From positions 3,814,389-3,878,388 of the forward strand of contig CM121343.1 of the NCBI GenBank assembly GCA_051530055.1: DNA of 64,000 nucleotides, in the 5' to 3' direction. The translations under genes and the position numbers were made by a program. Source of the DNA: Neoechinorhynchus agilis (lineage: Eukaryota; Animalia; Acanthocephala). Of the stretch, positions 951-40,781 are shown piece after piece (position 1 is the first letter of the stretch; the number at the start of each line of letters is the position of its first letter). Below the pieces are notes generated by a model that was not told where the DNA came from, did not search any database, and saw only the letters and a list, made by a program, of their open reading frames with translations.

Positions 951-1214
951 GCACCCAGTGGCCAAGTGGTGCGCGTTCAAAATGCGCTCGATTGGTCGCT
1001 GGGTTCCACGGGGGAGGGGTTACGAGGTTGCGGTTAGGGTAGGAGTCAGGTTTGAGATCGCCCATCGGCCCCAGAAAAGGGTTGGCCCTGTCCCTTCGAG
1101 TGCGACTGAGCGCCTCCGAAGTGTGTGAGTTAGCCGATAGGCTCCCTAAGGATATGTAGCCGAAAAGCTTTCTCCGCCGTAAGGCCCTGAGTGTATGCGA
1201 TTAAAGATAAATAA
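951..1214 (+). mobile_element. tRNA-derived SINE-like element
   Basis: GC-rich island with A-box TGGCCAAGTGG (959-969), anticodon-like hairpin GCGCG-TTCAAAA-TGCGC, partial B-box GGTTC (about 1002) and an A-rich end. Flanked by AACGACAGCC (941-950) and AACCACAGCC (1215-1224), a candidate target-site duplication. Confidence 0.6.
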
Positions 1215-1833
1215 AACCACAGCCACTTTGCCGTGAAATGATCTGTAAAAACCTGGGTTTTAATTCTGTGAAGGCCATTATTTTTTGGCTAAATCTGAAT
1301 AGTTTTAAATAATGCATAAACTTAGCTTATTGATCAAAATTAATATTAGAGGTAATAAAATATTATTTCATAACCAGACTGAGTGCACATATTTGTGAAA
1401 ATATAATTGCATAAGTTCCCTTCAATGGCCACTTTAAACATGAGTTCAGGCGAAGTCATAATATCGTCTCAGAAAATATTTAATACTTCTAAATTATGTC
1501 TTACTAAAGAAATAAAAATTTAATTACTAATATAGATCATTGTGAGCATCAATACCAAGTTCTTTGGAATGAACTAATCAGGAGTTACTAATTTAATTAT
1601 AGCATACAGAATTTCATGTGAACTTAGAAACATTTTAAGTTTTTTCAAGCATACGTTTGCTTAATCAAAGTTGAAAATTACTCGTTTACTCGATACCCCT
1701 TTATAACAACAGCGGGTGAGAAAACGCGAGAAATTGTTCATGGTAAAGATAAAGCAAAACGAGGTGCGGATGGACGATTGCAAACGGAGCTATATGTTCG
1801 ATAGGACTGTTTGAAGATTTAATTGTTCATGTT

Positions 1834-2035
1834 TTTATATGGCGTAAAAATCAAAAGGATTCATTGATTCCGATTGATTTCGGCATAATCTTGTACGCGT
1901 TTATCATGGTTCTTTAAGTGTTTTATTGACATTTAAGTGCGAATAAAACACTTAAACAGCCTTGATAAACGCGTACAAGATTGTGCCGAAATCAATCGGA
2001 ACCAATAAATCCTTTTGATTTTTACGCCATATAAA
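1834..2035. mobile_element. Fold-back (MITE-like) element, family A
   Basis: Long imperfect inverted repeat TTTATATGGCGTAAAAATCAAAAGGATT...AATCCTTTTGATTTTTACGCCATATAAA. Related pieces at about 3130-3170, 37325-37412 and 51875-52470. Confidence 0.8.
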
Positions 2036-3381
2036 TAAGGACTAATATTATGTACAAAAAACGGGCGGATCTACAATCTAGTTTATGATTAAATATCAGA
2101 AACTCTCGGATACATAACTCCTTAATCAAAGAAATAGGCTTTGTGACAAACGCTGGAAAATGCATTTGTCCGCGACTTTTAGATCAGGTCGTATAAAATT
2201 CGGATTTCGCTAGGATTCGATTCCCGTGATCATGCAAGCGGTTCCAATGTTTCATAGACAAAGAACGAAGTTGTAAAAAGAGTAAGCCATCAAAAACAAG
2301 CTCCAAGTAATTGGATAAAGTTGTTGGCTTAAGTGGCTTACTTTGATAGAACGAGTAATATGTCGCTTAGTATTACTATATATCGCAAAATGCAAAAGAA
2401 GGCAGCAATTTAGTCTTAATTGTTTGAAGTACGGATAAGGAGAGTACCTATAATAAATATATTAAACTTGTGAAACCAAGCTACAAGAATCGTTAGAGTT
2501 TTAATTCAAAAGTCACTTGCTTTCCGTCGATGCGCAAACTCAAAACAAATCGTAAAAGATAAACCAGAAGGTTGATCAGGAACTAAAATGTATTTTAGAC
2601 AGTGTTTACTCTCTTAATATCAAATTAGGCTAAAACTTTTTTTCATTAACATTTGAAGACAACAATTTGATAGCGAATCAATCATTAGATGTATATATTA
2701 TTATATCTGCAACTGAAAATATCTCGAATACTTGCAGCGGTGCTCATGCGTGAAAACTTGTTCAGGATTATCTTTGTAAGAAGAAGGTAAATTTTGAAAG
2801 TTATTGAAAGACGGACTAGGAAACTATAACGCATTTTAAACATTTGATTTTGGACGATATCGAATCGATCTACTTATTTAACAGCGATAGTTTTAAGACA
2901 TTAAATCTTATCTCAATTGCATGTTTTTAATAAATCGCATAAGTAAATTTTGAAGGTCATTAAAAATTGAATTACCTATTTAACAAGGATCACTTCAAGA
3001 TTTTTCCAGTATTTTGTTACCATTTGACAATATCTATAATACTGACAGCTTATGGCGATGACTAATTGAAGGAATTTTATTAAATCAGATATTTCGAACT
3101 CTGATTTGTTTCCCTTCATCTACTTCTAAACAACCTTGATAAAAGCGTACAAGATTGTGGCTCCGAAATGTCGGTCGCCATAAACGAGCATGAATAATTT
3201 AATATTCAAATAATACCGACAGAAATGTTCATATATATTAAAACTTATCCTGGGTGAACTTCCCTGGTGGAAATTAAATTTTAGAAGTAATTCGAGATGA
3301 ACCTGTGCTAATAAAATCATAGTTCAAAGAATTTTGCTTTAGGTCAATAAAATGAGGAAAGGAGGACAATTTTGCTTTAGG

Positions 3382-4411
3382 TTAACAAAATGAGGAAAGG
3401 AGGGCGGTATTTGATTTTGCAGTGCATGTAGACCATATACGGTTTCCGGTGCGTTTGCAGTCGATAGTCAAACCCGCATCGTAGGTAGGATCTTCAAAAG
3501 CGAGCATCTCCATTTCGAACGCTTTATGTGGACCGCAGTATTTCATAAAGGATGAATAATTTCCATTATACTCAGTAAGTGCCAATCTGCAGACTATTCT
3601 ATTGATCTCTGTACTTGAATTCATGTGAAACGTCGTCTCATTGAACATTGAACGTGTCAAAATAACGTGTTCACCTGCCGCAATGCAGTTTCCAATGGAC
3701 ACAAAATGGTAGTCGTGATCGTTTTCGTAGGCCATGCAGAATCTCAAGTACATTCTTGATTGATTGCTCATTAGCGACGGCGTGAAGGTGGATACTCGGT
3801 ATGAGTACACTGGTTCGTTCATTTTTTCCATAAAAACTTGTTCTCGAACGTCCATTATGGCGGTCGATAGCGGCGGCACCTATTTTTCCTTTAGAAGATG
3901 CTATATTTTTTTAGTAGAAGGATACATACCGCATTTTGGGGGCAAATGACTTGATCATGAACGAGCCACATGATTCCATGTGTTGAGTTTTGAACGCCGA
4001 AATGTACATATACAACAAAAGATTTATCGTGAACTTGGATTCCACATGAATCGAATTTCCTGTAAATCTGAATCATATAGCTGTAAGCATCACCGATTTG
4101 TGTGCATTCATTTGTGGGCATAATCGAATAATTTCCCGATAAACCGATGACCGGATATATGTTCTGATAAGTTTAATACAACATAAGAATGGTCACAAGA
4201 ACCGATATTATGTACCTTGTGGGAAATTAGTATCCCATTCCTGCAATCGATATGGGCATTTCTAACGAACCTCAATGCAATGGACGACACATGTAGCCTA
4301 ACTTAATGGCGATCGGACTTAATATTGAACCTTTATGGACATGATTGAAGGCTAACCCAGAATGGAAAGCGCCAGTATTCTCCACCAATACCCATTATTA
4401 CTTTTCATCAT
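3382..4411 (-). CDS. Secreted ZP (zona pellucida)-domain-like protein, 4 predicted exons
   Basis: Three GT-AG introns of about 50-55 nt join the ORF pieces in frame. Hydrophobic N-terminus WWRILALSIL; ZP-N-like Cys pattern IDC..NEC..DSCG..VICP; ZP-C-like YLRFCMA, FVSIGNC, RIVCRL. Confidence 0.6.
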
Positions 4412-33765: not shown

Positions 33766-36730
33766 ATGTCTGATATCGATTTATCTGGTTTGTCCGATAT
33801 TGAATCGAGTCTCAAAGTATTTCGAGATGCTAAGCATGAATTAATTGACTTGTTTCAGCGACTTGGAACGCTTTCGAATGCTCTACAGTCGTTCATTTGC
33901 GGTATTTGACCAATGTTTTGATTGGCTTTCTTGCTTACCATTTTCTAACTAGGCCAAGAGATTTCATTATTGGTCAAAGGCAGTGATGTAGTCGAGATGT
34001 TGAATTTTGATGAAAATATATCTCGAGTCACGGCCATTCTTAAGATGTTATCTCGTAATAGCATGAAAGTTTGTTTTTTTGGAAGAACAAGCAATGGGAA
34101 GAGTACGGTGATCAACTGCATGCTGCGAGATCGAATATTACCCGCTGGATTAGGTCATACGACTAACTGTTTTTTACAGGTCAGACTATTCCCAATCATT
34201 TTCCGATTAACGTGTTTATATTTCATAGATTGAAGGTTCAAATGAAGCCAAAGACACGGGTCCCTATTGTATTGTTCCTGGTCACGACGACAAACCATTT
34301 GAGATTGATGTTCTGGATTCAATTGCGAATGAAGAAGGGGACGACTTTAAAGTGGGTATCAGTGAGCTTGTCCGGATAATATGGCCTAAAGACGCCTGTA
34401 AATTTTTGAATGAGGATATTGTGCTGATTGATAGTCCTGGTATTGATGTCAGTGCGGACCTTGATTCATGGATCGAAGCTTACTGCATGGATGCGGACGT
34501 TTTTGTTTTAGTTTGCAACAGTGAAGCCGTCCTAAGTCGAACGGTGAGTTTCCTTTTTACACCACCTTTGTTACTGATTCTCAAAAACAACAAATAGGAG
34601 CGCAACTTCTTTGTTTCAGTGAGTGAAAAACTATCTAGTCCAAACATATTTATTTTAAACAATCGATGGGATATGACATCAAATGAGAGAAGGATGCACG
34701 AACTTCGTAAACAACACCAAAAACTGGAAACGGAGTTTTTGTGCGTGAAAATCAAAGTCTGTTCCACTGAAGCTGAAGCAAGCAAGCGCATTTTCTTCGT
34801 ATCAGCCAAAGAAACCCTTTCTAAACGGATATTGGAATTGAGACCTGACGCTAATGAAACAATCATTCAATTACCCGGTAATGACGAACGGAGTGACGAA
34901 TTTGATGCTTTCGAACAAGAGTTCACTAAGTGTATCAGCCAAAGTGCTGTCAGGACAAAATTCAAACCCCATACGGAACAAGGATTCAGAATCGCATGCC
35001 ATTATATCCATATGCTGAAATCGTTGCTTACTGAAATACAAGAAAAAAGTTACTTACTCGAAGAAAAACATAACTTTAGAGATCCTTCTTTAACCTGGTT
35101 GTGCATTTATATTCCAAATTTTGCAATTTAATGAAACGTTCATCCTATAATCAATTAAGCAGCTTGACTTCTTAACAATAAGTACTTATACGGAGATTTT
35201 TGGTTTCAAACGTTCCCCTTGCACTCGTCTTTGATTGGACAACGAACTCAAATTGCCTTTGCACCTTCTCGCTTGTTGTGTTTTTCAGCAAATAGCGCTT
35301 TGAAGTCTTATTCTAATTTTGTTAATTATTTTTTAATGTGGTTTTTGTATTAATGTTGGTGTATCAAAGCATTTTTAATATACAAAACTCGTCAATAAAG
35401 AAAATCAATGTTCTTTTGTACGCTTTTAAGTGGTTGTTTTTAATACACTTTTTTAATTTTCTTTAATGTTAAACGGGTAAAGAAATCTCTAGGATAAAGA
35501 GTTTGTTCAACGGGCAGAAAACATGGAACGACGATTGCATGAACTTACATATTTTGTGAAGGACAGGATTGGCCAGGTATCGATGGTAGTTGAAGAGAAG
35601 GTTTCATGTGCACTTTACGACGAATCGATACGATTGGCTGATTTGGTTGACAAATTTAAAGTTCCATTCAATTCGGAAGCGAATCATATTTCGTATTATA
35701 AGGAAGAGCTGAACAAGTATTTGGAGCAGAAATTGGGTGAAAATTTAAGTAGCCGATTGGGTCGCGTTTTAGCGACCACAACTGAAACGGTTGGCAAAGA
35801 TGTAAGAGACCGGATAGTTGAATTGTTAGCCGATGATGTTTCTTCGATAAATGATGTCCTACGAATCGTATACCGAGTTGATTTCTCTTCTGCTTATAGT
35901 CTCTACTTTTCGAACTTATGTTCCGATTTCAGGTAAGTTTCATTTAGAACGATACTTGTTTTACAATGTCAACTACTTTAGTGAAGACATCAGTTTCAAA
36001 TTTTCGCTTTCTCCGTATATTTTATTCGCTAGGATTTCCGCAAGATTCCGTAAAAATGTCAAACGTGATACTAAGTGGTCACCAACGGCTCCTCCTCTCC
36101 CTACAGCTCAAAGTCAAGAAGCAATGGAAATCGTTAAAGTAAGATTTTATATATTGATTTTCTTCTAAAATTGAATTCAAATAGCGATACTCACATCAGT
36201 CACAACAGTCAAGTGGATCATTAACATCAACAACTACGAATACTCTTCTTGCAATGCAAGCACTGGCGTTCCTGTCATCACCTAACAGTGCCGCTGCTGT
36301 TGCGATTGTAGGTGGATCGACGATCGCTTTTCGCGGATGGAAGATTTTGATCGGTGTTGGAGTTGCGATTGGTAGCGTATACGTCATTGAACGTGCCATG
36401 TGGACTCGCAGAGCTCAAGAAAGGACTTTTAAACGGCAATATGTCGATTTTGCGTCAGCTAAGCTTAAAATGGTTGCGGACAAAACAAGCGGAACTGCAA
36501 GTCAGCAGGTTCAACACGAATTAAGTCTTTATTTTGCACAAGTATGCCGATACGTCGATGAAAGTAAGGATCGAGTTTTGGACCAAGTCGGAAAACTGGA
36601 GGATCAGCTCAAAAATGTTATTTCTGTTAGTCAAAAATTGAAAACTTTCCTTGACTCCGCGACTGCTATACGTGATGCTATCGACGGATTTTCACACAAA
36701 TTTCTATTTGACACAAAACATGGGCTATAG
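33766..36730 (+). CDS. MFN: Mitofusin (Marf/Fzo1-like GTPase), multi-exon
   Basis: [63 protein letters not shown], paired transmembrane segments and C-terminal FKRQYVDFA; GT-AG introns. Confidence 0.97.
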
Positions 36731-37204
36731 AGAGAAAGAGACCATGTTCATTCAATGAAATAATGTGATATTAGATGGAATATGTACTCGATTTTATCCG
36801 ATAACATGATAACCTTTGCGATTTGTTTTAAACTTTGACGTACACTACTTTTTTTCGCTCCGAAAAACCTTACGCTTTTCAGTTAGAGGTTCAATGAAAA
36901 TAAAACTACGATTATACCCTTAAATATTAATTCAAAATCAGCTCCAGTCTCTCCGAGACTGAGGGATATTTCATAAAAAACACTGAACTTTTCTCTCGAA
37001 CTAACCGTTTTACCCATCGTTTGTCGCGAATGTGTATTTGGTATTTTATAATAGAAGAATTAATCAAAACCTGCGCCTGTCTAAAAAAGCGAGAGGCGGG
37101 TTCGGAGGAAACTTGAATGTCGTTTACTACCAAATTTTCCGGAAAACAACCCTTTGCTTGTCGGTTTTCCGTTCTTTTCATTAATCCTACAAAGCATAAG
37201 TCTG

Positions 37205-37280
37205 CAACGGGACGCTGTCTCCCGTTACACCACTAAGGCAGCTGAGTGATCCAGAAAGGCGGTGGGTGAATGATTTCATG
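37205..37280 (+). mobile_element. Short 3'-end remnant of a CRE-clade element
   Basis: CCGTTACACCACTAAGGCAG..GAGTGATCCAGAA matches the reverse complement of 52925-52975. Confidence 0.6.
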
Positions 37281-37324
37281 ACCTTAAAAAATAAGTTCTC
37301 TCATTGTCGATATTATTTTAGGTG

Positions 37325-37412
37325 CGTATTTAACAACCTTGATAGACGCGTATGAGATTGTACTTCCGAAATCAATCGGAACCAATAAATCCTTGTAATT
37401 TTTCAACGCCTA
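37325..37412. mobile_element. Family A MITE half-copy
   Basis: CCTTGATAGACGCGTATGAGATTG..CCGAAATCAATCGGAACCAATAAATCC matches 1960-2015. Confidence 0.7.
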
Positions 37413-37532
37413 TTTGTCGCTAAAAGGTTCGGAATCATTAGTAAATAATGCGATAAAGTATTTTATCCGAGGCACACCTATGAGTTTAGTCATAAAGAGT
37501 TCGATTTATTCGAGATTCCTCCTGCAAACACC

Positions 37533-39488
37533 TCAACGGTTCGCCGCACTCGGTGGCGCTTTTATGGTCTGGTCAACGCTAAGTACCAAGCATACCGCTT
37601 CCGTTGCTGCTCTGATACAATTGATTTTCACGCTAGCAGGTTCCCATATTCCAGTTTCGAAAGTGTCCACAATTGAATCAACTTTATTGACATCGACCCC
37701 ATACGACTTACCTTTATAATCGACTTCATATTTGATTTCCAACTTTATAGCCGAATTAGTTTTCGACTCTAAACATAATGACTTGGCAGACTCTGAATGC
37801 GAAGCCACAAATGGCGACAACTCAATATTTTCGAATCGAACAAGAGAACGAGTTTTATCAGTGCTTGAGCTAAAATTTAGCGATAGCAAATCGGTTCCAA
37901 TGGGCTGTATGGCATGAACAGAGAAGCGCAATTCAAATTGTTTGTTCAAATCTTTAATCTCAGTCGTTGCAACGGTCTTTTGCGACGCATCAACTCCACG
38001 GTACAGAACGACAGTGAACATTTGATCATCAGTGACATTTAGTTTAGAAAGCAGTCGACAATTCAAGATAAAATCCCGTTCACTGTGTTTTTGACGGAGT
38101 AGAGTAAGAGCGTTGATTGAATCGAACCCTGCATTATCGCACAGCTGACGCGGAATCACTTCAAATGCTCTTCCAATTATCCTAATAACCAATTGATCCT
38201 TACCACTGACAGTCAAACTTCTTATTCGCAAATATCCGGACACGTCCATTTCACAGGCTCCTCCACCAGCAACGATCAAATCATTCTTAAGCGTCCTTCT
38301 TACAACCATAATCGCATCATGAAGTGACCTTTCGGTTTCATCCATATATTGCTGCGCTCCACCTCTTATTATAAAAGTACACGACTTTCCAAGAGGACAA
38401 TCTTTGAACACATTGAACCTACACGCACCAATCTGAACCTCATCGAATCGCCCACATCGTCCGTACGAAGAATCACTGATGTTATCAACCGTGGACACAA
38501 TGCATCCACCACAAGCCTTCATTGTCCTGGTCATGTCTTCATCGGGAATACGACCAGCACAGAATATTCCTCGATCCGCGAAATACTGAGTAGCTACGTC
38601 ACCAATTGGAAGACGAGAAAGGACTACATTTACGCCTGCATTAGCCAAAACTTCCATCTTTTTATAAAGAATGGTCCATTCAGCGTCGATAACTTGCTGA
38701 TAATCCTCAACAGATCGAATCCTAAGTTCAGCATTGTCCCTTTCTGCCTTTAATTCAAGTTCAATGTTCAATAGAGCTATTTTAGCACCTTTGTAAGTCT
38801 TTGGTTGCATTTCAAACCCAGCGTAGGAGAAAGCTTTTTTAAAAGCAACTCCATCGATCAGACAAGAATCGCTGACGCTACCACCAGCCACTTTTTTTAT
38901 TCCAATCATTTGAAGTGGTAAAGATTCCTGATCCAGCATTAAGACGGCTTTCACAACCAAATGCGCAAAATGTCCCTTGTGTTGAGCGATCAATTTCGAG
39001 TTTAGACTGGTTGTTGCACAACGCTTTAAAAGTCCAATATCAACTTGATTGTTGTTTGTTCGGATACTCACAGCGGACTCATTTATTTTCTCGACGGCCA
39101 TTGCACAAGCACGACGAGTAGCGCGGATTATAGCGGTTGGGTGGACGCCGTCCATTACTAATTTTTTTAAATGGTTGATCATCTCGCATGCTAGTAAAAC
39201 AACACTGGTGGTGCCATCGCCTACTTCATCATCCTGCGATCGAGCTATCTCGACTAAGGATTTAGCTGCTGGATGAACTACTTCAAGGCAGCTCATTACC
39301 GTCGCACCGTCATTGCTCACTGTTACCTTCCGTGAGCTATCCACTATGAGTTTATCCATTCCGCATGGACCCAAAGTTGTACGAACAGCCTCACCAACCG
39401 CTAAACAAGCATTCAGATTCGACACGAGGTGCTGGTCACCATCAGAAGCATTGGAACCGTCCTTAAGAATTATCACCGTAGGATGCAT
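37533..39488 (-). CDS. CCT7: T-complex protein 1 subunit eta, with a 122-aa internal insertion
   Basis: VRTTLGPCGMDKLI, SNDGAT, VGDGTTSV and the eta-specific FSYAGFEMQPK and ELELKAERDNAE; C-terminal YGVD..WEPASVKIN..AATEA. Single 651-codon ORF. Confidence 0.98.
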   Translation of the reverse strand: MHPTVIILKDGSNASDGDQHLVSNLNACLAVGEAVRTTLGPCGMDKLIVDSSRKVTVSNDGATVMSCLEVVHPAAKSLVEIARSQDDEVGDGTTSVVLLACEMINHLKKLVMDGVHPTAIIRATRRACAMAVEKINESAVSIRTNNNQVDIGLLKRCATTSLNSKLIAQHKGHFAHLVVKAVLMLDQESLPLQMIGIKKVAGGSVSDSCLIDGVAFKKAFSYAGFEMQPKTYKGAKIALLNIELELKAERDNAELRIRSVEDYQQVIDAEWTILYKKMEVLANAGVNVVLSRLPIGDVATQYFADRGIFCAGRIPDEDMTRTMKACGGCIVSTVDNISDSSYGRCGRFDEVQIGACRFNVFKDCPLGKSCTFIIRGGAQQYMDETERSLHDAIMVVRRTLKNDLIVAGGGACEMDVSGYLRIRSLTVSGKDQLVIRIIGRAFEVIPRQLCDNAGFDSINALTLLRQKHSERDFILNCRLLSKLNVTDDQMFTVVLYRGVDASQKTVATTEIKDLNKQFELRFSVHAIQPIGTDLLSLNFSSSTDKTRSLVRFENIELSPFVASHSESAKSLCLESKTNSAIKLEIKYEVDYKGKSYGVDVNKVDSIVDTFETGIWEPASVKINCIRAATEAVCLVLSVDQTIKAPPSAANR

Positions 39489-39640
39489 TCGATCTGCTGA
39501 GGAGAAACGCTAAGAACGGGCGACGCACAAACATGCGAAGGAACCACAAAACCCGGAAGTGTCGACGATTCGCAAATTGTTGTGACGTCACTTATCCTAA
39601 CTTTTTTATAAAAACTTTTAAAAGTACGTTCCACAAATCC

Positions 39641-40781
39641 CTGACGCACAGTTACATTCAACGGTCATAGGCGAATCGCAATGCGTTCCCCTTTTTGGAC
39701 TTTTTGATAATTAGATAAGAAACAGAGTTTGCAACCAGTGATTATACAGGAAGATTGGCGCACCGATGACAAATACTCATTTATCAAAATGGTCCCGTTT
39801 AATTATAAAACGAAAAGCATGAAGTCTCGGTTTGATTGTGCCTACTACTATTGCTCCAATAGGGATTTCCTCAAAAATAAGTCAGAGCTTCTTAGAAATA
39901 CGTTCAAAGGAAAGGGCTATCAAATCTACGTGATAAGAAGAGCAAGTTGCAGTTTTCTATGGAAGGAAAACAGCGTGACAGGAGTCGAAACGAAGGGCCT
40001 TCATAAGTGTGGCATTCGTCGGCGAAGAGTTTTTCACCACAATTAACGATTTGATTAATGGAGCTGCGCCCAAAGACATAGATTCTAATAACAAAAGAAC
40101 AAAAAAATGCTCTGAGGAGAGGTACTGATGCCAGTTCTGCTATGGAATGTTCGTGATTTCATTTCTGGACTGTTCTGCTACTTTCTTGAGAAAGCTTTTT
40201 CGACAAAAGAATATCAGCGGACACGAACTTCGGTCCAGCGTATTGACAGAAATATATTTCCTTTTTGACAACTTTTTGTTTTTAACCGGTAAAAACAAAA
40301 CTTGATCATTGATGCGGCTGGAAAATCAAGTTGTGTTTCAAAAGGTTTTCTACAAATTACCGTTGCATTGCCTTTAATACATTCCCACAAACCATTGATC
40401 GGGCTTGTTATGGAAATTGGCTGGGATGGACTCTGAGAGCTCCATGTTTTTTGGAGGCATTTCCATTCGTATTTAAGTACGCAATTTGTCGATGGACATT
40501 TGTTTATTCAAATCTTTTGATCGGCATTTTCGAATCAACACAATCGCACTCTTCTCCATTAATTGCGATACACAAATAAGCTCACAATGAACACCTATAA
40601 CTGATTTTGGTTTTCTTGTTAGTGTTCTTTAACATATTACCAGGAGTCTTTTCTTTATTTTGCTATCCGGTACTCATTTTGCCCAAGGCCAGCAATTTCT
40701 CTAATTTGATTAAAAGCCTTCATGGGGCTAAATCGTTTATCGCATTTTTAACAACGGAATCTTAGAGGATTGAAAGTGGAG
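39641..40781. repeat. 1.14-kb dispersed duplication, copy 2
   Basis: Near-identical to 17941-19080; begins about 150 bp upstream of the CCT7 ATG. Confidence 0.95.

Follow-up and report, generated by a model that had tools for sequence, protein, structure and literature searches.

Introduction

The subunits of the chaperonin TRiC/CCT rank among the most conserved eukaryotic proteins, and the differences known among them consist of small loops and tails. Family-specific insertions are found in the chaperonin-like proteins BBS6/MKKS, BBS10 and BBS12. Engineered additions to TRiC subunits have also been described: functional human TRiC has been produced with His-tagged CCT7, the position of the tag within CCT7 being unstated (PMC8219831), and yeast CCT1 with eGFP placed at K488/P489 of the equatorial domain is viable at endogenous expression, the eGFP appearing as density outside the ring (PMC5799240). 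The present analysis concerns the CCT7 (TCP-1 eta) gene of the acanthocephalan Neoechinorhynchus agilis, which lies on the minus strand of a 64,000-nt stretch of DNA, hereafter the window (GenBank assembly GCA_051530055.1, contig CM121343.1, positions 3,814,389 to 3,878,388 of the forward strand; coordinates below are those of the window unless another sequence is named). The single reading frame of this gene contains 366 nt, or 122 codons, that canonical CCT7 lacks. It is considered likely that this insert is a translated, lineage-specific domain of the only detectable CCT7, derived within an intron, adopting a C2 fold and acting as a docking module on the outer wall of the chaperonin.

The CCT7 gene and its in-frame insert

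The minus-strand open reading frame begins at 39488, continues without interruption to 37533 and codes for 651 residues. Its product is matched by the Pfam family Cpn60_TCP1 (PF00118) with an E-value of 7.1e-147, in two stretches that flank the insert. Solved CCT eta chains match the 651-residue protein at an E-value of about 1e-200 (679 bits), far ahead of the other CCT subunits, the next best of which (beta, alpha and gamma) reach about 1e-77 to 1e-83. Outside the insert, the protein is 62-64 % identical to canonical CCT7 and collinear with it over its full length. The nucleotide-binding motif GDGTT (G90, D91, G92, T93 and T94) is invariant in the alignment, and all invariant nucleotide-binding and ring-contact motifs are retained. 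The gene is a bona fide CCT eta, a group II chaperonin subunit. As the only CCT7 found, its product presumably joins the hetero-oligomeric TRiC ring.

Human CCT7 aligns only to residues 3-470 and 593-648 of the N. agilis protein, the C-terminal match comprising chain residues 482-536 of a tagged 553-residue construct. Because the human protein aligns on both sides with nothing in between, the unmatched residues 471-592 constitute an insertion. They take the place of one or two residues between the canonical motifs LR.(K/R)H.. and WYGVD. An initial annotation of the window had described a 366-nt insertion without stop codon or frameshift between LRQKHSE and GKSYGVD, sites only a few residues apart in canonical CCT7; that description is exact to the base, and both flanks are present as given. 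Within the insert, no stop codon occurs in the CCT7 frame, compared with 3-14 stops in each of the five other frames, and only 0.015 % of mononucleotide shuffles of the insert are free of stops.

A word search for homologues restricted to the insert returned only the N. agilis protein itself, a corresponding search with the P. laevis insert likewise matched just its own protein, and phmmer with the N. agilis insert found 0 matches among 1.84 billion representative sequences. No second copy or donor of the insert was found by tblastn against the window and all other loci that were compared. Two classes of mobile element were considered and rejected. An intein is incompatible with the ends of the insert, which starts with Arg-Asp-Phe and finishes with Asp-Tyr-Lys before Gly, and so has neither an N-terminal Cys or Ser nor a C-terminal His-Asn followed by a nucleophile. 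A hairpin element with terminal inverted repeats was discarded as well, because the insert has no such repeats and folds no better than its shuffles (z 0.87).

Retention in mature mRNA

Contigs from three RNA runs (X1, X3 and X4) and one DNA run of the same organism were compared over 34400-39700, with the neighbouring mitofusin-like gene serving as an internal splicing control. All three RNA runs skip the introns of this gene at 34543-34596, 35070-35493, 35931-35979 and 36139-36184, and their depth is zero in its long intron and in both intergenic regions; the DNA run has none of these joints. Since the long intron and the intergenic regions are empty, the RNA runs represent true spliced RNA free of assembled DNA background.

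Over CCT7, a single 2004-nt contig of X1 spans 37490-39493 with one mismatch and no gap. A contig of X3 covers 37504-38604, and one of X4 covers 37493-38084 and overlaps the next contig; the contigs of these two runs tile the span of the X1 contig, on either side of which RNA depth is zero. The contigs of the three RNA libraries contain no joint within CCT7. The 366 nt are kept in the mature mRNA and hence are not an intron. The initial annotation had left an intron (GTGAAC..ATAAAG) as a formal alternative; this pair is indeed present in the DNA, no RNA contig uses it, and the retention of the segment by the contigs across 37700-38090 largely settles the doubt.

Inserts in related acanthocephalans

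Among 5427 strong CCT7 matches, only two besides the N. agilis protein itself cover the whole query. One is GJ496_011030 of Pomphorhynchus laevis, a protein of 645 residues with a 110-residue insert (residues 477-586). The other is a 639-residue CCT7 with a 108-residue insert, encoded by a 2053-nt contig of SRR6291331 (L001); its presumed source is a second palaeacanthocephalan, which may have been sequenced as part of a sample from its host. Both inserts begin directly after the same Glu-Arg as that of N. agilis.

The inserts of P. laevis and SRR6291331 are 48 % identical, compared with 84 % for the chaperonin cores. Identity at codon positions 1, 2 and 3 of the insert is 62, 68 and 20 %, respectively, and the nonsynonymous proportion of differences is 0.34 with synonymous sites saturated. 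The nonsynonymous divergence (dN) is 0.46 in the insert and 0.11 in the core, so that the insert evolves about four times faster. The initial annotation had suggested looking in relatives for the same insertion under constraint, and the same-site inserts in two relatives and the constrained codon positions bear this out; the ratio of nonsynonymous to synonymous divergence (dN/dS) is not computable, because synonymous sites are saturated in every pair, and codon-position identity was used in its place. Judged from these sequence comparisons, the insert behaves as a protein-coding segment under purifying selection.

Between the N. agilis insert and the other two, identity is 12-16 %, the hhalign probability is 0.2 % and the shuffle z is about 0. 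The core dN between the two classes is 0.28, from which a value of about 1.2 is expected for the insert, and 1.32 is observed. This rate ratio predicts divergence of the kind seen and would account for the lack of residual similarity between the N. agilis and P. laevis inserts. Common descent of the three inserts is the parsimonious reading; it rests on shared site, size and predicted fold.

Predicted fold of the insert

The N. agilis insert was modelled with AlphaFold, together with short flanks, from a three-sequence alignment. The model is all-beta with eight strands and of moderate confidence (mean predicted local distance difference test score (pLDDT) 64, predicted template modelling score (pTM) 0.58). 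In a full-length AlphaFold model of P. laevis CCT7, the insert also has eight strands, within residues 478-584, with a pLDDT of about 74-85. When the N. agilis model was compared with the PDB by Foldseek, the top 50 matches were all C2 domains. The best solved structural match is CEP120 C2A, and the predicted domain superposes over its whole length on solved C2 domains, above other sandwich folds. Matches among Swiss-Prot models in the AlphaFold DB include cPLA2, SRC2, CAPS and CEP120, followed at lower ranks by NT-C2 proteins (EEIG1 and a PMI1 relative). When language-model features were computed for the N. agilis insert by itself, C2 clusters again prevailed, with 81 of 100 matches, although the score of 0.88 is weak; a single NT-C2 cluster is found among the matches, at rank 68.

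No Pfam family is found for the N. agilis insert at E-values up to 10, and neither C2 (PF00168) nor NT-C2 (PF10358) matches. No Asp is invariant across the three inserts, and among all residues only eight scattered ones are conserved. The predicted tip loops hold 1-2 Asp in N. agilis and 0-1 in P. laevis, as judged from predicted strand positions only. On the predicted structure, the insert is assigned a C2 fold, with membership neither of a C2 sequence family nor of NT-C2.

The beta-domain character proposed in the initial annotation therefore agrees with the models, which predict an eight-stranded C2-type beta-sandwich. Its more specific identification as an NT-C2 domain of the EEIG1/EHBP1 type is not sustained: Pfam gives no NT-C2 match even at an E-value of 10, EEIG1 stands at structural ranks 12 and 28 (template modelling (TM) scores 0.46-0.48), behind C2 domains of the cPLA2 type, and the orthologous inserts do not share the landmarks that had been recognized by eye as NT-C2-like.

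Position on the chaperonin

In the structures PDB 7ttn_C and 7trg_C, recombinant human CCT7 is longer by 10 residues between 470 and 482, which is where the N. agilis domain is inserted. Residue 470 of N. agilis CCT7 aligns with residue 483 of yeast CCT1, and the site that accepted eGFP in yeast would therefore be the equivalent equatorial loop. By analogy with these constructs, the host loop appears to be exposed and permissive, since it tolerates both tags and eGFP.

The termini of C2 domains are adjacent, and the two C2 topologies are circular permutations of each other. Adjacent termini suit insertion into a loop. The N. agilis domain would thus be joined through its two neighbouring ends to a loop on the surface of the equatorial domain. 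Each TRiC double ring would bear two copies of it, placed on the outside close to the equator and clear of the folding chamber. The best matches, namely cPLA2, PKC delta and epsilon, PLC and ferlin C2A, are type II C2 domains, whose termini are found at the end away from the tip loops. If the insert shares this topology, its tip loops would face away from the chaperonin.

Proposed function

The variable tip loops would probably serve, independently of calcium, as a surface at which a membrane, the cytoskeleton or a protein partner docks. The favoured role predicted from the models is accordingly that of a constitutive, surface-exposed docking module of C2 type. A function is supported by two observations: lineages that have diverged deeply still share the fold, the length and the strand pattern, and intron loss did not remove the insert.

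A further, rather doubtful extension is that TRiC is spatially anchored in acanthocephalans, with the two C2 domains of each complex tethering it to membrane, microtubules or other cytoskeleton. CEP120 C2A is a tubulin-binding C2 domain. If such anchoring were true, actin and tubulin would be folded chiefly at certain sites in the syncytial tegument or the lemnisci, and the insert would be without natural precedent as a targeting module within a subunit of the TRiC ring.

Origin and intron history

The CCT7 gene of P. laevis extends over 15.6 kb (L002 5001-20588) and has at least seven introns. Its insert is encoded by two exons, of 288 nt (L002 16009-16296) and 39 nt (L002 18669-18707), and the three introns flanking these exons are all GT-AG and all in phase 1. 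The CCT7 genes of a fish (L003) and a crustacean (L004) each have one single intron at the insert site, which in the crustacean is in phase 1 after Glu and in the fish lies one base upstream in phase 0. Dropping both insert exons from the P. laevis gene restores the canonical loop length, with CAG (Gln) as the split codon; dropping 37715-38077 (363 nt) from the N. agilis gene likewise restores it, with the codon CAA (Gln).

On the basis of the P. laevis exon phases, the outgroup introns and the restored loop, the domain is proposed to have arisen in an acanthocephalan ancestor, as symmetric phase 1-1 exons within the last ancestral CCT7 intron. It may have been captured as a ready-made domain or have been created by exonisation. 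Later, every CCT7 intron would have been lost in the line leading to N. agilis, fusing the domain into one exon. Intron loss proceeds through spliced RNA, which is consistent with the insert belonging to the mature message. The sequence from outgroup intron to phase 1-1 exons, and to a fused exon after intron loss, would represent an unusually clean record of domain entry.

The N. agilis CCT7 gene is intronless, compared with at least seven introns in P. laevis, and its neighbour has several introns of 46-54 nt. This suggests gene-specific complete intron loss by cDNA-mediated conversion or replacement.

Features of the locus and its neighbourhood

The features of the CCT7 locus are listed in Table 1. 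The first 470 residues comprise the N-terminal part of the equatorial domain, the intermediate and apical domains and most of the C-terminal part of the equatorial domain. At the 3' end of the gene, the CCT7 RNA contigs stop at 37490-37504, and the loose end of X4 at 37493 consists of adaptor and a T run.

Table 1. Coordinates of CCT7 features in the window
Feature	Position	Strand	Basis or remark
CCT7 (TCP-1 eta) mRNA, intronless, ~2.0 kb	37493..39493	minus	collinear RNA contigs
CCT7 coding sequence, single exon, 651 codons + stop	37533..39488	minus	open reading frame; Pfam; best PDB matches are CCT eta
Canonical CCT7, residues 1-470	38079..39488	minus	aligns to human CCT7 residues 3-470
Inserted domain, residues 471-592, 122 codons	37713..38078	minus	predicted eight-stranded C2-type beta-sandwich
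Insert bounded by orthology to P. laevis exon borders	37715-38077	minus	363 nt, phase 1 to phase 1
Canonical C-terminal equatorial segment, residues 593-651 + stop	37533..37712	minus	aligns to human CCT7 C-terminus
AATAAA polyadenylation signal	37505..37510	minus	~12-15 nt upstream of transcript end near 37493

Judged by the ends of the RNA contigs, the 5' untranslated region of CCT7 (39489-39505, minus strand) is only about 5-17 nt long. In the intergenic region downstream of CCT7, the contig depth of the DNA run jumps from about 90 to 1000-4300 at 37222-37290, where short contigs are numerous and their loose ends diverge, a pattern indicative of a short high-copy repeat. Of the RNA runs, one (X3) contributes a contig of low depth in this interval.

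Within the mitofusin-like gene (plus strand), the 424 nt at 35070-35493 are skipped exactly in the contigs of X1, X3 and X4, whereas the DNA run retains them. The segment ends in AT..GG, with no GT-AG register possible, and a 4-nt ATAA, which contains TA, is repeated at both of its borders. Imperfect terminal inverted repeats lie near both ends, and removal of the segment restores the reading frame exactly. These features constitute transcript-level evidence for a TA-bounded, non-canonical insert ending in terminal inverted repeats.

Competing interpretations

Several points weigh against the interpretation of the insert as a C2-type docking module common to these acanthocephalans. Assembled contigs drop rare variants, so that a minor spliced isoform would escape detection, and the available portion of the supplements to the P. 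laevis proteome paper (PMC7310846) lists CCT eta as a cluster only, with no peptides. Sequence comparison detects no similarity of the N. agilis insert to those of the P. laevis type, and the fast divergence of the insert fits weak functional constraint. The sample of inserts consists of three acanthocephalan sequences. As regards the fold, the two structure predictions share the alignment of the three inserts and are not fully independent, and the N. agilis model is only moderately confident at its pLDDT of 64. For the P. laevis-type insert, ESM Atlas neighbours favour generic Ig-like sandwiches; the language-model features of the SRR6291331 insert do the same, and the sub-threshold Pfam hints for both P. 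laevis-type inserts are Ig-like. An acidic calcium-binding cluster is not conserved among the three inserts.

Three alternatives to this interpretation carry little probability. It is very unlikely that an intron (GTGAAC..ATAAAG), whether retained or spliced alternatively, or else a TA-bounded hairpin insert accounts for the segment, with the working protein made without it. Such a reading could appeal to the GT..AG pair in a compatible register and to the unusual insert that is removed from RNA 2.6 kb away, in the mitofusin-like gene; yet three RNA libraries that do remove the neighbour's introns show no joint here, the segment is stop-free in the CCT7 frame alone, relatives conserve it as coding sequence, and for a hairpin insert both the terminal inverted repeats and a favourable folding score are lacking. 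Scarcely credible, too, is the idea that the intronless copy is a retrocopy or decaying paralogue while a canonical CCT7 elsewhere does the work, despite the contrast between an intron-free gene here and both the intron-rich P. laevis orthologue and the neighbouring gene with its several introns. The depth of CCT7 RNA contigs equals or exceeds that of the neighbour, the reading frame is intact with all invariant chaperonin motifs, no poly(A) tract or remnant is present downstream of the gene, and the insert is also present in P. laevis, where the gene has introns. No other close CCT7 was found among the 5427 database matches, the whole genome being outside this search; the P. laevis-type proteins follow at 56 %, and a second, canonical CCT7, the presence of which would have relieved this copy of its role, is thus not among them. 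In S3 Table of PMC7310846, CCT eta is a single-copy orthologue cluster in P. laevis and rotifers. That the N. agilis insert and those of the P. laevis type entered one ancestral intron in separate events is improbable, if less so: the two types share no detectable similarity, their lengths differ (122 versus 108-110 residues), and single-sequence methods lean towards C2 for one and Ig-like for the other, observations to be set beside the shared site and predicted fold on which common descent rests.

The main rival of the docking module is a passenger domain, translated and folded and yet functionless, which is kept by selection against frameshifts, stops and misfolding in an essential subunit. 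This is a serious contender, even if it falls somewhat short of an even chance. The roughly fourfold excess of insert over core dN, the 12-16 % identity between the two acanthocephalan classes and the tolerance of the loop for unrelated engineered insertions, eGFP included, are all in keeping with it, as is the scarcity of conserved motifs, which do not go beyond the eight scattered residues and include no acidic cluster. A passenger, however, does not readily account for the clear constraint on codon positions 1 and 2, nor for the fact that lineages with cores 34 % different have kept the length, the eight strands and the C2 fold. Furthermore, the insert outlived complete intron loss, though the deletion of a useless segment from an exposed loop should be easy and harmless. 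The docking module remains the favoured reading of the insert.

Relation to described systems

A literature search found no paper that reports an inserted domain in any CCT subunit, whether from acanthocephalans or from other animals, and the N. agilis genome and transcriptome paper makes no mention of CCT, chaperonins or introns. If the present interpretation is correct, the outer equatorial wall of TRiC can evolve new modules in nature, and the insert marks a site useful for engineering. It would also provide a ready-made test of whether a built-in adaptor can localise a chaperonin, a candidate synapomorphy and thus a clade marker for Acanthocephala, and a parasite-specific surface on an essential protein.

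Compared with canonical CCT7 (human, PDB 6qb8_h and 7ttn_C), the N. agilis protein is collinear, shares its motifs and groups with eta. The two differ at the loop, where canonical CCT7 has one or two residues and N. agilis CCT7 a predicted folded domain of 122 residues, and in that the N. agilis gene is intronless. The engineered TRiC loop insertions (7ttn/7trg and yeast CCT1 with eGFP) occupy the same exposed loop and are compatible with assembly and viability. They are laboratory constructs, whereas the acanthocephalan insert is natural, fixed in the clade and, by the codon comparisons, under purifying selection.

Type II C2 domains (CEP120 C2A, ferlin C2A, cPLA2, SHIP2 and PI3K C2) are 8-15 % identical to the insert. 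They are separate modules of signalling and trafficking proteins, while the insert is embedded in a loop of another domain, matches no C2 or NT-C2 profile and has no conserved calcium-binding Asp cluster. NT-C2 domains (EEIG1, EHBP1 and PMI1) have the same superfamily fold, and EEIG1 and a PMI1 relative appear at AlphaFold DB ranks 12, 16 and 28. These matches rank below classical C2 domains (TM 0.43-0.48), and NT-C2 domains are N-terminal, unlike the internal insert. Finally, the CCT-like domain of PIKfyve turned up as a structural match. PIKfyve and the BBS proteins resemble N. agilis CCT7 in combining the group II chaperonin fold with added segments; however, they are diverged paralogues outside the TRiC ring, whereas the N. 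agilis protein is apparently the sole CCT7 orthologue.

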